Shown here piece by piece: positions 36,846 to 63,227 of a stretch of 64,000 bases of DNA; the stretch's first letter is position 1, and each line of letters opens with the position of its first letter. Location of the stretch: sequence record NC_091964.1; one strand, 5' to 3'. The notes beneath the pieces are model-generated. The model did no database searches. It was not told where the DNA came from and worked only from the letters and a program-made list of their open reading frames with translations. The translations under genes were made by a program, and so were the position numbers.

Positions 36846-36860
36846 ACTTTTTGTCAAGTA

Positions 36861-36875
36861 TATATCATCATAGTG
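36861..36875 (+). promoter_or_regulatory. Early-type promoter
   Basis: TATATCATCATAGTG followed by a GAGGGAG/CTCCCTC hairpin. Confidence 0.65.
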
Positions 36876-36928
36876 ACGAGGGAGTTCAATCTCCCTCATT
36901 ACTTTTTATTTTTGGGATAAGAAAAGAA

Positions 36929-53483: not shown

Positions 53484-54458
53484 ATGGAACAGACTAACAA
53501 AAAGATCGGCATCTATGGTTGCGGCGGTGGCGGCACTAATCTTCTGGCAATGGTCGAGAAGAAAATCAAAACCGAAAACCTGGCTGGCGTTTATGCCCCG
53601 TACAACGCTGTTTATATCGACAGCTCCGAATCTAACTTCGATGACCTGATCCCAGCCGGTGCCCAGAAGTATCGTATCGCTAACATGGATGGCGCGGGCA
53701 AGATCCGTGACGACATGCTCGAACCGGCTCGCCGCGAAGCGCCGAACATTCTTTTCCAGTACCCGCCTCAGGATGTTAACATTCTGGTCTGTACAGCAGG
53801 CGGCGGTACAGGTGCTATCCTGGCAACCGTGCTGGCTGAGAAAATGTGGGAAGCGGGTAAACGTGTTATCTTCGTTTCTCCGGCATCTATCGAATCCGGT
53901 AAAACAGCGAAAAACTCCCTGGGCCACATCCGTACCCTGAACAACCGTGCAAAAGCCAACGGCCAAACGTCGGTACTGTTCTACGACAACAACGAAGCCG
54001 GTAACAAAAACCGTAACGAAGTTGACCGTGGTATGGTGCTGGGTATCTGCGCCCTGCTCGATCTGTACAGCGGTAAACATCGTGAGATGGATACCAAAGA
54101 CGTTGAGCAATGGCTGAACCTGGGCAAATCCGCGAACCTGGAACCGCAGCTGGTACTTCTCGATATCGACACTAATATCGAAGATGCGAAAGCTCGCCAG
54201 TACCCGATCTCCATCAACGCGATCTACTCCGAAGCTGATGCGACCAAAGGTTCTCCTTCTGCCGACTATCTGTCCGAAGGTTATCGTCGCGATGGCGGCG
54301 GTTCTCTGTTCTTCAGTATCCACACTGACGGCCTGGGCAACATCGCCAACGACCTGCAAGCAGTTGTAACCAGCTACGAGCAGCGCGCTGCTGCCCGCCA
54401 GTCTACTGCTAACAATGCGCTGGGCTCCAGCAACAGCAACGACGGCTGGGAGCTGTAA
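53484..54458 (+). CDS. phuZ: PhuZ phage tubulin
   Basis: GCGGGG, IDSSESN, DGAG, AGGGTG signature, T7-loop DTKD and acidic C-tail DGWEL. Confidence 0.95.
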   Translation: MEQTNKKIGIYGCGGGGTNLLAMVEKKIKTENLAGVYAPYNAVYIDSSESNFDDLIPAGAQKYRIANMDGAGKIRDDMLEPARREAPNILFQYPPQDVNILVCTAGGGTGAILATVLAEKMWEAGKRVIFVSPASIESGKTAKNSLGHIRTLNNRAKANGQTSVLFYDNNEAGNKNRNEVDRGMVLGICALLDLYSGKHREMDTKDVEQWLNLGKSANLEPQLVLLDIDTNIEDAKARQYPISINAIYSEADATKGSPSADYLSEGYRRDGGGSLFFSIHTDGLGNIANDLQAVVTSYEQRAAARQSTANNALGSSNSNDGWEL

Positions 54459-54473
54459 TCCCGAGGAGGAGTC

Positions 54474-54824
54474 ATGTTCTTTACATACGGCTCCTCTACA
54501 AAGGGCCTAAGCCAGGAGCACTTAGCGGTTCTTCGTAGAGCCGCTATTTACGAGATTAACCTCGAGAAATATGCTGGTAAGCGTATAGTAGAAGTTAAGA
54601 TCGATGTTGAAGGCAGGACGATCAAATTGGTCGTCGTTGTTGCTAAGGAGGAGTTATGTTCGTCAAGTGGGAGCGAGGACTCTACGGCATCCGTCCCGTT
54701 ATCGAGTTCAACATTATGCAACCGGATGATCAACTTACTCCGGCGCAACGTGTTATCAAGAAGCTTCATTTTGATTATAATCGTCGAGCTTTTAGCTTTC
54801 CATTGGCGGGAAAGATCACGATAA
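54474..54824 (+). CDS. Hypothetical protein overlapping the next gene by 169 nt
   Basis: GAGGAGGAG RBS. Confidence 0.6.
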   Translation: MFFTYGSSTKGLSQEHLAVLRRAAIYEINLEKYAGKRIVEVKIDVEGRTIKLVVVVAKEELCSSSGSEDSTASVPLSSSTLCNRMINLLRRNVLSRSFILIIIVELLAFHWRERSR

Positions 54825-54931
54825 AAGATCTAAGTGAAACTATGGCTGAATACTATAGTCAGCCTCAATGGTCTAACGAATGGAGAGGAGGTCAGGCAAA
54901 TGCCGGTACGTTACCGCTTGCCCAAGGTTAG
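54656..54931 (+). CDS. Hypothetical protein, 91 aa
   Basis: AAGGAGGAG RBS. Confidence 0.6.
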   Translation: MFVKWERGLYGIRPVIEFNIMQPDDQLTPAQRVIKKLHFDYNRRAFSFPLAGKITIKDLSETMAEYYSQPQWSNEWRGGQANAGTLPLAQG

Positions 54932-55002
54932 CTTTAAGCCTTCCTTAATGGATCGGCTTTTAAAGCGCCGCTTGACGATGTGCAAGTAAAATAATACATC
55001 CT

Positions 55003-55272
55003 ATGTAGAAGACCGCTTGCGCTTCACTTATCATCCACGCTCGCGGTCGTAATTCTACATTAAAAATCTGGCAACTCACAAGCCGCTTTGGTGCGGAATG
55101 AGAAAGGCGATCTTCTGCGAAATTCGCCTGGTAGGGAATCGACACAATGCTGCTATGGCTAAGCGCTGCACGAGCGCCTGAGGACTAGCGGCTGAAAGTT
55201 CGTAGTACTTACTGTAAACTGAGATCTCTCCCTGCCTGATGGCAGGGTAGAGGTCACACCTTTATTTTTTTT
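55003..55272 (+). ncRNA. Candidate ~265-nt structured non-coding RNA
   Basis: TATG element at 55002-55005, long 5' hairpin, multi-branch domain, terminal hairpin plus T-run; no strong ORF. Confidence 0.6.
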
Positions 55273-55294
55273 TTGTTTAAGCAATTTACGGGTA

Positions 55295-55309
55295 TATATT
55301 ATCATTGTG
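55295..55309 (+). promoter_or_regulatory. Early-type promoter of the array and DNA polymerase unit
   Basis: TATATTATCATTGTG. Confidence 0.6.
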
Positions 55310-55402
55310 TAATATAAGCTCTGTAATCAATTTCTAAGAACTTTTCTTATTAAATGATGAAACGGTATCAGTTGATGTAAAAAACTCGGGAGGAATCGAT
55401 CT

Positions 55403-55870
55403 ATGGATTCTGAGAAGGTAGAGCTGCAAGCTTTTGTATTCGGGATGAGTTCGGTGCTTAAACTCCACCATCGCAAAGGGAAGTTACCAGCATCTCTTCC
55501 TAATATAGTTGCAGCTGCTATTAGTGCCTACTGGGAGAATGGTTCTTACGAAGGATTCTGTAAGATAATGTCGGAAAGGATTATCACCGTAGCAATAAAG
55601 GAAACAAGGATGTTGGCCGAGATCCCAGATCGGCTTTATAGTGAGAAGGATCACGCAGCATTCCTGGAAGCATTATACCAGGAAGTGTATAGCTTCTTTG
55701 AACTTTGCTTCATGGAAGACTATCGGTATCTCGCTCGCTCGTTTTATACAGGTGATTCGATCATGGTAGTGTTCGCACGTAAACCATGCACGGTGACTTA
55801 TATTGAGACGGGTCCATTCACCGGCGTCTATAAGGTCAGCATGGCCAAAATAAAAGAAGATGAGAAATGA
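55403..55870 (+). CDS. Array protein 1
   Basis: GGAGGA RBS; beta-start / helical / beta-end architecture. Confidence 0.75.
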   Translation: MDSEKVELQAFVFGMSSVLKLHHRKGKLPASLPNIVAAAISAYWENGSYEGFCKIMSERIITVAIKETRMLAEIPDRLYSEKDHAAFLEALYQEVYSFFELCFMEDYRYLARSFYTGDSIMVVFARKPCTVTYIETGPFTGVYKVSMAKIKEDEK

Positions 55871-56324
55871 CAAGTTAACGGTAATAATAGATATCAAAAG
55901 ACTCTTTCGCATCTGCGATGAGTTCTTCCCTTTTCTTAGTCAGGATGATTACAATGAAGTCATTCGATATAAGTTAAGCAAGGAGAACTGTTACGATGTC
56001 GAGGGATTCAGTCATCAGCATGTAGGTTCCTTCACTCACATGCTACTCAATCAAATACAAAATGCAGGTGGTTTCTTTATACGACTACCTCCAGGAGTAA
56101 TTAGCATTGGGGAGATCACGACGAATAAGACGACTGCTCGAATCGTCTGCTCCGGAAAGGGAGGAGTGTTTAATTCTGACGGAACCGTCCGCTCTGCGGA
56201 TTCTCCGTTACGACTTGGTGTTCACCGACAAGCTGAAAGACAGCGAGATAGAAGACTTGATTTTATCTTGGGTGACCGCTTACCAGGCACTTCGAACGCC
56301 GTTCGAGTCATTCTGGGAATTTAA
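55860..56324 (+). CDS. Array protein 2
   Basis: VIIDIKRL start; 3' part overlaps the next ORF. Confidence 0.7.
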   Translation: MRNDKLTVIIDIKRLFRICDEFFPFLSQDDYNEVIRYKLSKENCYDVEGFSHQHVGSFTHMLLNQIQNAGGFFIRLPPGVISIGEITTNKTTARIVCSGKGGVFNSDGTVRSADSPLRLGVHRQAERQRDRRLDFILGDRLPGTSNAVRVILGI

Positions 56325-56616
56325 ACTCTCCGAACGTAAGAGCTATATTGACGATCTAGGCGAACATCTACAAGCTTGGTTCTACGATAAGTTCTTGATG
56401 GACTTCACCGAGGATCTGAACGAAGAAGAAAAAGACAAGATCGAAGAGCGATGGTTCAATTGGCTCGACGTGATTGAGTTAGTCCAAACTTCTGATTACT
56501 TCGAACTGCTATACCGTTTCATCGAACAGATAGCGGATGTTGATTACGAAATCGACAAAGTCAAAGTAACCAGACGAAAGGTGATAATTGAGTATGGACA
56601 ACGTAGTAGTAATTGA
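56107..56616 (+). CDS. Array protein 3 (start uncertain)
   Basis: Acidic helical body; ends KVTRRKVIIEY. Confidence 0.7.
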   Translation: MGRSRRIRRLLESSAPEREECLILTEPSALRILRYDLVFTDKLKDSEIEDLILSWVTAYQALRTPFESFWEFKLSERKSYIDDLGEHLQAWFYDKFLMDFTEDLNEEEKDKIEERWFNWLDVIELVQTSDYFELLYRFIEQIADVDYEIDKVKVTRRKVIIEYGQRSSN

Positions 56617-63124: not shown

Positions 63125-63227
63125 AGTAGCCTCCGGGATGGTTTACATAGGATACCGACAAGGTGCTTAAAGTCAATATAGTTATATATCATCCTAAGGA
63201 TAGAAGTTTATTCCTCAGGAGTTTCAA

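Follow-up and report, generated by a model that had tools for sequence, protein, structure and literature searches.

A structured RNA element downstream of phuZ in Serratia phage PCH45 and related nucleus-forming jumbo phages

We describe a candidate non-coding RNA that lies downstream of phuZ in a stretch of 64,000 nucleotides (nt) from NC_091964.1. We refer to the whole stretch as the window, and positions are those of the window unless we mention a GenBank record. The sequence at 54900-55420 matches Serratia phage PCH45 (MN334766) with 100% identity, and position 1 of the window is position 124001 of that record. PCH45 is a nucleus-forming jumbo phage whose host is Serratia sp. ATCC 39006. 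Its PhuZ (tubulin) is encoded by an open reading frame (ORF) of 324 residues at 53484-54458. The GenBank annotation is empty between record positions 178931 and 179403 (window 54932-55402), and the RNA element lies inside that gap. The original prediction, from the sequence alone, was of a structured RNA with its own promoter and terminator. We propose that the element is a gene, present in a single copy, for a structured non-coding RNA of ~270 nt, from 55005 to about 55274 on the + strand, and that it represents an uncatalogued RNA family that occurs in a clade of nucleus-forming jumbo phages of Enterobacterales. We have little doubt that the element is a real and conserved structured RNA element, and it is probably a discrete, independent transcript as well. 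In nucleus-forming jumbo phages, transcription and translation take place apart and the RNAs are exported, and the non-coding RNAs of these phages are almost uncharted.

The features of the element, and the promoter-like box that bounds it, are:

55002-55005, + strand: TATG late-promoter motif; the predicted +1 is G55005
55005-55058, + strand: P1 hairpin (GUAGAA/UUCUAC and GACCGC/GCGGUC) with a 16-nt apical loop, beginning at the predicted +1
55059-55082, + strand: linker AUUAAAAAUCUGGCAACUCACAAG, single-stranded
55083-55096, + strand: HP2, with a CCGC/GCGG stem and the 6-nt loop UUUGGU
55097-55104, + strand: junction J2/3, AAUGAGAA
55105-55129, + strand: HP3, with an outer helix AGGCGA/UCGCCU, an internal loop, and an inner helix UUC/GAA (55113-15 with 55119-21)
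55130-55213, + strand: middle domain, made up of P4, P5, P6, and an apical hairpin; found in the PCH45 subgroup only
55130-35 with 55208-13, + strand: P4, GGUAGG with CUUACU
55140-42 with 55200-02, + strand: P5, CGA/UCG
55149-54 with 55187-92, + strand: P6, GCUGCU with AGCGGC
55163-77, + strand: apical hairpin GCGCU/AGCGC, within the middle domain
55223-55255, + strand: terminator hairpin, GAUCUCUCCCUGCC-UGAU-GGCAGGG(U)AGAGGUC
55256-55274, + strand: spacer ACACC and U-tract UUUAUUUUUUUUUU, the predicted 3' end of the RNA
55292-55303, + strand: early-promoter-like box GTATATATTATC, which belongs to the downstream operon and is the 3' boundary, outside the RNA

Our sample of relatives comprised 20 phuZ loci (19 of them on distinct sequences; PhuZ identity 34-98%) plus the corresponding locus of Klebsiella phage KpLz-2_45, or 21 in total. 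By tblastn with PhuZ, the nearest phages in GenBank are SPLA10, from Salmonella, at 55.5% and PhiEaH1, from Erwinia, at 34%. A protein search led to 13 further relatives of PhuZ, at 36-96% identity, whose contigs we retrieved; a metagenome scan added the loci that we label L019, L021, and L022; and the loci from phages Moabite and KpLz-2_45 were also included. Scans of IMG/VR for PhuZ returned nothing, or a duplicate of PhiEaH1 alone, and a PhuZ scan of genome contigs returned nothing.

Every locus of the clade has a non-coding gap of ~270-480 nt, either right after phuZ or after 1-3 small ORFs that follow phuZ. TATG opens this gap in all 21 loci, and most loci have the same overall layout. 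The shared order is TATG, a variable P1, the linker, HP2, a short junction, HP3, a lineage-specific domain, a GC-rich hairpin, and the early box. The GC-rich hairpin is strong and, in most members, is followed by (N)3-7 and UUUAUUUUUUUUU. The position of the PCH45 RNA is also fixed among relatives: it is downstream of phuZ and just ahead of an early promoter.

The region 55003-55272 has a predicted minimum free energy (MFE) of -95.9 kcal/mol, versus -76.4 ± 4.6 for 200 dinucleotide shuffles, none of which was equally good (z = -4.25). Reading the sequence, we found the helices, loop, terminal hairpin, T-run, and ORF that the original prediction had listed, each in its place; these include the hairpins AGGCGA/TCGCCT (55105-29) and GCGCT/AGCGC (55163-77). 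One of the proposed helices did not survive the comparison with relatives (see below).

Comparison with the relatives identifies a real RNA family with a conserved core. A plain approach, running MAFFT and RNAalifold on just PCH45, SPLA10, and PhiEaH1, did not give a useful alignment because these sequences are too divergent. We built a covariance model (R1) of the linker, HP2, and HP3, with 76 positions and 13 pairs, and searched it against the window and 46 loci (351 kb). R1 has a single match in the window, at 55058-55138 (71.6 bits, E = 5e-11), which contains HP2; under R1 and a second model (R2), the range is 71.6-77.8 bits. R1 also matches L013, L012, L009, L006, L021, L008, L019, SPLA10, L015, L010, and L016 at 49-86 bits. 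L050 scores 22 bits under R1 and 50 bits under R2. In all, 11 distinct sequences match at E ≤ 1e-6 (R1 or R2, with L050 counted under R2). R2 finds exactly one copy in the complete 212.8-kb genome of PCH45 and has no matches in 688 kb of unrelated viral DNA from IMG/VR. (This negative control consists of the 80 loci listed in a scan of IMG/VR for the exact 14-mer CTACAATCTGAAAC; those 14-mer hits were due to chance only.)

The paired positions of the core also covary. We aligned 13 sequences, 12 of them distinct, with the model as a guide; in this alignment, 84.6% of the cells can pair, and all 13 pairs show compensatory double changes. The covariation of the core is 0.592, versus 0.204 ± 0.037 in shuffles (0 of 500 were as high) and at most 0.143 if the partners are slid by 1-3 columns. 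A model-guided alignment leans towards the structure, so as a counter-check we used a plain MAFFT alignment with a hand-assigned structure. This gave a covariation of 0.485, versus 0.220 ± 0.042 in shuffles (0 of 500), with slid controls at or below 0.194 and compensatory changes in 8 of the 13 pairs. Together, the tests of covariation and homology imply that the core fold is under selection.

Within the core, the stems change and certain unpaired letters do not. Compensatory changes are seen in 4 of 4 pairs of HP2 (for example CCGA/UCGG, CACUCUC/GAGAGU, and CGGUC/GACC) and in 9 of 9 pairs of HP3 (for example GGCUU/AAGCC, AGCUC/GAGCU, GACC/GGUC, and the inner UUC/GAA, which becomes AUC/GAU). 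The family consensus of the HP2 loop is UUAAGU, in which U1, U2, and U6 are invariant, and the loop is predicted to be unpaired. We considered a pseudoknot that involves this loop and rejected it, as the variable letters 3-5 have no covarying partner that we could see by eye. The linker has the family consensus CUUUAAAAAUCUGRAAC, and its letters are kept while the adjoining stems covary; the junction J2/3 has the consensus uAAU (both from alignment A7). The predicted probability that the linker is unpaired is 0.51-0.79 in 9 homologues, versus 0.38-0.49 for the RNAs as a whole. The portion of the linker that is strictly common to all clades is only ~6 nt (AAUCUG).

The clear members of the family are PCH45 and seven close metagenomic lineages, SPLA10, L015, L016, and L050. 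Probable distant members are Iapetusvirus (PhiEaH1), L014, L018, L022, and Moabitevirus (Moabite); Iapetusvirus and Moabitevirus are genera of Chimalliviridae. For three of these, the top match of R2 is weak and at the expected place (PhiEaH1 at 13.8 bits, L018 at 13.1 bits, and Moabite at 15.2 bits), and the match in Moabite spans HP3 and an HP2 of the form CGGA-UUAAGU-UCCG. It is uncertain if L017 belongs to the family, as it shares only the TATG, a small hairpin, and the terminator. Neither the models nor a search for HP2-like hairpins found the core in phiKZ or in L023-L049 (PhuZ identity of about 32% or less), and R1 gave only noise in the phuZ locus of phiKZ and in the distant PhuZ loci. 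The covariance models of the core can be used to annotate the RNA in new genomes.

The slot in KpLz-2_45 (L167 3866-3975) has a different content: TAGTATG, ~40 nt, a hairpin GGAGCGGGG-UUUU-CCCGCUCC, a U-run, and the early box ACATATATTACC. It amounts to a minimal unit of promoter and terminator that lacks the folded core.

The sequence of the RNA turns over fast around a fixed core fold: PCH45 and L006 are 64% identical at the nucleotide level in the RNA, versus 90% in phuZ. The peripheral domains are lineage-specific, and in PCH45 they are the 5' hairpin and the middle domain with its GAA/AGUA motif. P1 pairs ATGTAGAA (55003-10) with TTCTACAT (55053-60) and GACCGC (55011-16) with GCGGTC (55043-48). 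It is stable on its own (-19.6 kcal/mol, z = -4.1). L012, L013, and L016 have a strong equivalent of P1 and L009, L017, and L022 a weak one, and there is none in L018 or in L006, whose PhuZ is 96% identical to that of PCH45. P1 is thus a variable peripheral element. The original prediction had suggested that its 16-nt loop is antisense to the GGAAAAUAAG leaders. The relatives argue against this: the hairpin is the least conserved part of the RNA, it is lost in L006 and L018, and the loop is different in every lineage. In L050 (2684-2936), there is ~180 nt between the TATG and the linker instead of a short P1, and the contig stops inside HP3.

The middle domain is replaced or absent in L010, L015, L016, and SPLA10. 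In the 8 sequences of the PCH45 subgroup, 89% of the cells in P4, P5, and P6 taken together are paired. P4, P5, and P6 each have one compensatory pair, and P6 is GUUGUU/AGCGAC in L006. The original prediction had instead closed a second domain with AGCCGCT (55081-87) and AGCGGCT (55187-93). These segments are complementary in PCH45, but CCGC pairs locally with GCGG 55093-96 to form HP2 and AGCGGC pairs with GCUGCU to form P6. In L010, L012, and L013, CCGC changes to CCGA, accompanied by a change in the local partner from GCGG to UCGG. Even the MFE fold of PCH45 favors the HP2 and P6 pairings over AGCCGCU/AGCGGCU. Three G-U pairs (G55130-U55213, G55134-U55209, and U55151-G55190) would be A-C mismatches on the opposite strand. 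Because of these G-U pairs in P4 and P6, and because the covariance models match the + strand alone, we conclude that the RNA is read from the + strand.

Between P4 and P5, GAA (55136-38) lies opposite AGUA (55204-07), and both are invariant in the 8 sequences of the subgroup. We take this arrangement to be the sequence signature of a bulged-G (sarcin-ricin or loop-E) motif: AGUA faces GAA between Watson-Crick helices, there is a G-C pair beside the A of AGUA, and the flanking helices P4 and P5 covary. The likeness is to the sequence signature only. It is a local motif of the PCH45 subgroup, absent from other clades; there is no GAGA tetraloop; and Rfam finds no similarity to 23S or 5S rRNA.

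The RNA does not match any catalogued family. In a scan of 54000-56500 with Rfam 15 (E ≤ 10), the only match was to isrC, on the opposite strand and over the terminator, at 16 bits (E = 8; the gathering score is 39). At gathering thresholds, 14 homologous loci had no Rfam hits, and ARAGORN found no tRNA or tmRNA genes in the whole window. These empty searches agree with the original prediction, which recognized no tRNA, tmRNA, RNase P, 6S RNA, or ribozyme. Along with the z-score of the fold and the compensatory changes, they support its view of the element as structured, non-coding, and uncatalogued. Looking for covariation at homologous loci had been proposed as a check, and we found it in the core, the middle domain, and the terminator.

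At the 5' end, our interpretation draws on phiKZ, where the late promoter is TATG, which is required for late transcription by the non-virion RNA polymerase (nvRNAP), with the G as the start site (PMC4666361). In phiKZ, TATG is needed but does not suffice for late transcription. Where a small ORF that encodes a basic peptide (described below) is present upstream of the RNA, its stop codon lies 12 nt before the TATG in 10 of 11 loci and 13 nt before it in L010. We predict that transcription starts at G55005 because TATG is at the 5' edge in 21 of 21 loci, because the phiKZ late promoter starts at this G, and because the spacing from the stop codon is nearly constant. The original prediction had relied on a similar promoter context at 63144-63151. 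The window does hold a second copy of the 10-mer ATCCTATGTA (54998-55007), at 63144-63153 on the minus strand. However, with up to 2 mismatches allowed, the window has 35 matches to this context versus 55 expected, which is no enrichment, and our promoter call relies on the conservation of TATG in relatives and not on the 10-mer.

At the 3' end, the terminator hairpin is part of the MFE fold, and this last helix covaries in relatives (pairs 240-274 of alignment A3). It is strong (-26 kcal/mol, with 10 U), and in most homologues, though not in SPLA10, the last hairpin is followed by CUUUAUUUUUUUUU. A simple terminator scan missed this hairpin because there are 5 nt between the stem and the T-run at 55261-74. 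The same layout, with a strong hairpin, a spacer of 5-6 nt, and UUUAUUUUU, is also found at 36903 and 41878 in PCH45, and it looks like the standard terminator of this phage. So for the predicted promoter and terminator, the motifs at both ends of the RNA are present, and it is from these motifs that an independent transcript is suggested.

We note that the three sites with this terminator layout (36903, 41878, and 55261, all on the + strand) have spacers that end in AC or CC, followed by UUU(UU)AUUUUU. Standard scans that require the T-run to be within 2 nt of the stem overlook this layout. The first of these sites is part of a compact unit at 36855-36915 (+ strand), which has an early-promoter-like box AAGTATATATCATC, then directly the hairpin GAGGGAG-UUCAAU-CUCCCUC, and then CAUUAC and UUUUUAUUUUU. 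This unit would yield an early transcript of only ~45-55 nt.

Beyond the terminator, the exact sequence TATATATTATC occurs once in the window, at the early-promoter-like box (55292-55303). In most loci of the PCH45 subgroup, an early box lies within ~20 nt of the element at a nearly fixed distance, and all of the other loci have one too.

What might this RNA do? Our best explanation as a whole, including the mechanism, is that it is a stable, late, structured RNA that acts in trans, and we put this forward tentatively. The nvRNAP of the phage would start at the G of the conserved TATG, and most transcripts would end at the type of hairpin and U-run that this phage normally uses for termination. 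With one hairpin at +1 and another at its 3' end, the RNA would be stable and would therefore accumulate from mid to late infection. It would then act in trans, with the linker and the HP2 loop as a surface that is read by a partner and that is presented by the hairpins. The idea of such a surface is suggested by where the conserved letters are, namely in the linker, in the HP2 loop, and in the junction, next to stems that covary, and by the predicted accessibility of the linker and the loop. We favor a protein as the partner (in a scaffold or decoy ribonucleoprotein) over RNA-RNA pairing because the conserved features are structural modules and because the genome of the phage has no conspicuous complementary site. 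That the RNA is a protein-binding, trans-acting RNA is possible, and we hold this part of the proposal loosely.

A k-mer search of the 212.8-kb PCH45 genome for complements of at least 9 nt to the linker, HP2, or J2/3 found no excess, and a k-mer search of the window likewise gave nothing beyond expectation. For 9-mers from the linker, there were 11 complements, versus 26 expected. The genome does contain a 12-mer complement, at record positions ~65318-65329; it is antisense to a coding gene and within what is expected by chance, so we rejected it as a target. We also considered mimicry of host sequences, and a blastn search against E. coli genomes found no match. Mimicry of a CRISPR repeat or of boxB was considered because CUGCC/GGCAG, the stem of the terminator, and the hairpin GCGCU/AGCGC look similar to known hairpins; neither the loop nor the stem is conserved in relatives, and we rejected this as well.

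6S RNA, CsrB, and RsmZ are structured RNAs that sequester proteins. An abundant structured RNA that binds a protein is also the mechanism that we favor for the PCH45 RNA. It differs from these RNAs in that it has no Rfam match, no mimic of a promoter bubble, and no array of GGA loops. More speculatively, and this we consider doubtful, the RNA could be a subunit of a phage-specific ribonucleoprotein that several genera of nucleus-forming Enterobacterales phages have in common. It might, for example, pair with the arginine-rich micro-protein that is encoded immediately upstream in many members, as an ARM peptide does with its hairpin. If such a ribonucleoprotein exists, it might act on the switch from early to late or on the movement of RNA through the nuclear shell, or it might be a decoy for a host RNA-binding or RNA-sensing factor.

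Several observations weigh against a discrete RNA with a function in trans. We did not find a transcriptome of PCH45 in the searchable literature, so the start, the end, and the abundance of the RNA are all inferred. In SPLA10, the last hairpin is not followed by a U-run, and PhiEaH1 and Moabite have one that is weak or distant, which makes read-through into the downstream operon plausible. Early promoters in phiKZ have a T-rich element upstream of -19 (PMC8244752), and the T-run at 55261-74 may belong to the early promoter or may serve both units. PCH45 lacks a terminator between the upstream ORFs and the element, so the element would also be the 3' end of transcripts from the phuZ operon. 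The minimal slot of KpLz-2_45 implies that the transcription unit is older or more widespread than the folded core, which gives some weight to roles in cis. As for partners, the flanking proteins have no match in Pfam or PHROG, except for an upstream divergent gene with DUF7484. Finally, the RNA may pair with mRNAs of the host or the phage through short seeds of 6-8 nt.

The first alternative is that the TATG-driven transcription is meant for the downstream operon of small genes. The element would then be a late 5' leader or attenuator whose hairpin and U-run set the level of read-through, and the short RNA would be a by-product. This has precedents in phiKZ, where many terminators in 5' untranslated regions (5'UTRs) yield abundant RNAs of under 250 nt along with read-through mRNAs (17 candidates; PMC10914365 and PMC8545117). 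It would also fit with the element always being directly upstream of an operon, with the last hairpin of SPLA10 having no U-run, and with KpLz-2_45 retaining only the TATG, ~40 nt, and the terminator. However, every locus has a separate early promoter between the terminator and the genes. The segment that adjoins the terminator is the most variable (it is variable or absent in L015 and L016, and the core of L015 abuts the terminator). A leader or attenuator, or a riboswitch, would be expected to show a conserved antiterminator pairing; we saw none when reading the alignments by eye, without a dedicated search. The strength of the terminator hairpin also counts against regulated read-through. 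We consider this explanation unlikely, though a serious rival.

Another alternative is a base-pairing small RNA (sRNA) of the enterobacterial Hfq/ProQ type, with the linker, with or without the HP2 loop, as the seed and with the terminator hairpin and U-tail binding the chaperone. The known Hfq/ProQ-dependent sRNAs and phage sRNAs (PMC12197685) resemble the PCH45 RNA in having a stand-alone promoter (a predicted one in PCH45), a conserved single-stranded stretch, hairpins, a terminator with a U-tail, and hosts in the Enterobacterales. The architecture fits: a 5' hairpin, a conserved and accessible A/U-rich single strand, hairpins, and a U-tailed terminator. The letters of the linker are conserved while the stems covary, and the named phages with a recognizable core infect Enterobacterales (Serratia, Salmonella, and Erwinia). 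On the other hand, the PCH45 genome has no excess of complementary sites of at least 9 nt, and the single 11-12-mer is antisense to a coding gene. The stretch of linker that is shared by all clades is just ~6 nt. At ~270 nt and with several folded modules, the RNA is long for a seed-type sRNA, and it would be transcribed by a phage RNA polymerase inside the phage nucleus. We consider this explanation to be about as unlikely as a leader or attenuator.

Third, the element might have no function in trans and could simply be where the phuZ operon ends, as a structured 3'UTR that would stabilize transcripts against 3' exonucleases and insulate the late phuZ unit from the early operon. The lack of a terminator after the last upstream ORF (which stops at 54989) implies that RNAs from the phuZ operon of PCH45 end here, and the position after phuZ is conserved. 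Yet a bare terminator would need only ~50 nt, TATG lies exactly at the 5' edge in 21 of 21 loci, and the covarying core, with its invariant loop letters, is 130-170 nt upstream of the terminator. Also, in PhiEaH1 and L022, another hairpin lies between the stop codon of phuZ and the TATG. We think that this explanation is quite unlikely.

Origins of replication in T7 and T4 consist of a promoter plus an AT-tract. A primer or R-loop RNA from an origin, beside an AT-rich unwinding region, would resemble our element, in which a promoter and a structured transcript are followed by a T10 run and AT-rich DNA, but this is a resemblance only: the cumulative GC skew has no inflection at 55 kb in the window, the AT-rich tract is accounted for by the terminator and the early promoter, and there is no link to replication proteins, so we consider an origin transcript to be very improbable. 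Last, it is hardly credible that the element encodes the 27-residue peptide of the ORF at 55098-55181, which the original prediction rightly called weak: an ATG-initiated ORF is present, and L006, L012, L013, and SPLA10 also have an in-frame ATG (at UAAUGG), but there is no start codon in six lineages (L009, L021, L010, L015, L016, and L050), the stop codon falls after 12, 27, or 32 codons, there is no Shine-Dalgarno sequence, and the compensatory changes in HP3 alter the encoded residues (KAIFCEIRL, MAFFCELSL, or MASFSERCR).

The closest precedents for a stand-alone structured RNA in a nucleus-forming jumbo phage are from phiKZ. The candidates there are the "5'UTR of p40" RNA of ~180-196 nt, an RNA from the 3'UTR of PHIKZ298, and 17 candidates from ONT-cappable-seq (PMC8545117, PMC10914365); no covariation-supported family is reported for them in the papers that we consulted. 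Like the PCH45 RNA as we predict it, they are short structured RNAs with a phage promoter and an intrinsic terminator, they lie just upstream of genes, and they have no convincing ORF. They are not syntenic with the PCH45 RNA, as phuZ (PHIKZ039) and PHIKZ040 are 55 nt apart, and so differ from it in position. We had suspected that the phiKZ "5'UTR_gp40" (the 196-nt non-coding RNA from Grad-seq; Putzeys et al.) might be in the same slot, given that gp39 is PhuZ, and the 55-nt gap rules this out. The name "p40" appears to come from the PHIKZ_pNN series of locus tags, in operon 50 (Gerovac et al.), rather than to mean gp40. From its sequence and context, the PCH45 RNA appears to be a phage-encoded, stand-alone structured RNA whose family is itself uncatalogued.

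Transposon sequencing and Cas13-based selection already exist for PCH45 (bioRxiv 10.64898/2025.12.19.695335). With these genetic tools, a clear covariation signal, and a defined single-copy core, the role of a non-coding RNA from a jumbo phage is directly testable.

The genes around the RNA also have some features of their own. Upstream, at 54900-54989 (+ strand), there is an unannotated ORF of 29 codons (MPVRYRLPKVSFKPSLMDRLLKRRLTMCK) with a GGAGG ribosome-binding site, which overlaps the end of a 91-residue gene in another frame. The basic peptide that it encodes has the motif PSLM(D/E)xLLxRRL, which is kept in L019, L006, L008, L009, L021, L010, L012, and L013, and L014 and SPLA10 have more distant homologues (in SPLA10, a 32-residue ORF is annotated). 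The ORF is absent where phuZ adjoins the RNA directly (L015-L018, PhiEaH1, and Moabite).

Downstream of the early promoter, at 55322-55372 (+ strand), there is a conserved 5'UTR element, AATCAATTTCTAAGAACTTTTCTTATTAAATGATGAAAC, in which a hairpin UAAGAA/UUCUUA lies inside AUCAxUU/AAxUGAU. It is recognizable in L012, L013, L015, L017, L018, PhiEaH1, and Moabite, and it may be related to the recurrent leader that was mentioned in the original prediction. In some close relatives, the early promoter and the homologue of a 155-residue gene also have another gene between them, which is 137-139 residues long (at 5807-6220 in L006, L007, and L008; at 1951-2370 in L009; and at 2748-3167 in L010) and is absent from PCH45. 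The junction between the RNA and the operon is therefore a site of gene gain or loss.

The other large gap in PCH45, of 381 nt at record positions 78852-79233 (L169 28852-29233), reads as an ORF (ATGGCGGGTAATGGACATGTC...) and is probably a missed gene, not an RNA. Another unannotated ORF lies at 54474-54653 (+ strand; the frame is open to 54824) and fills the 197 nt that separate phuZ from the annotated gene of 91 residues. The same gap of ~200 nt after phuZ is left uncalled in L006, L009, L010, L012, and L013. The context of the start codon at 54474, GAGGAGGAGTCATGTTC, almost repeats that of the next gene, AAGGAGGAGTTATGTTC.

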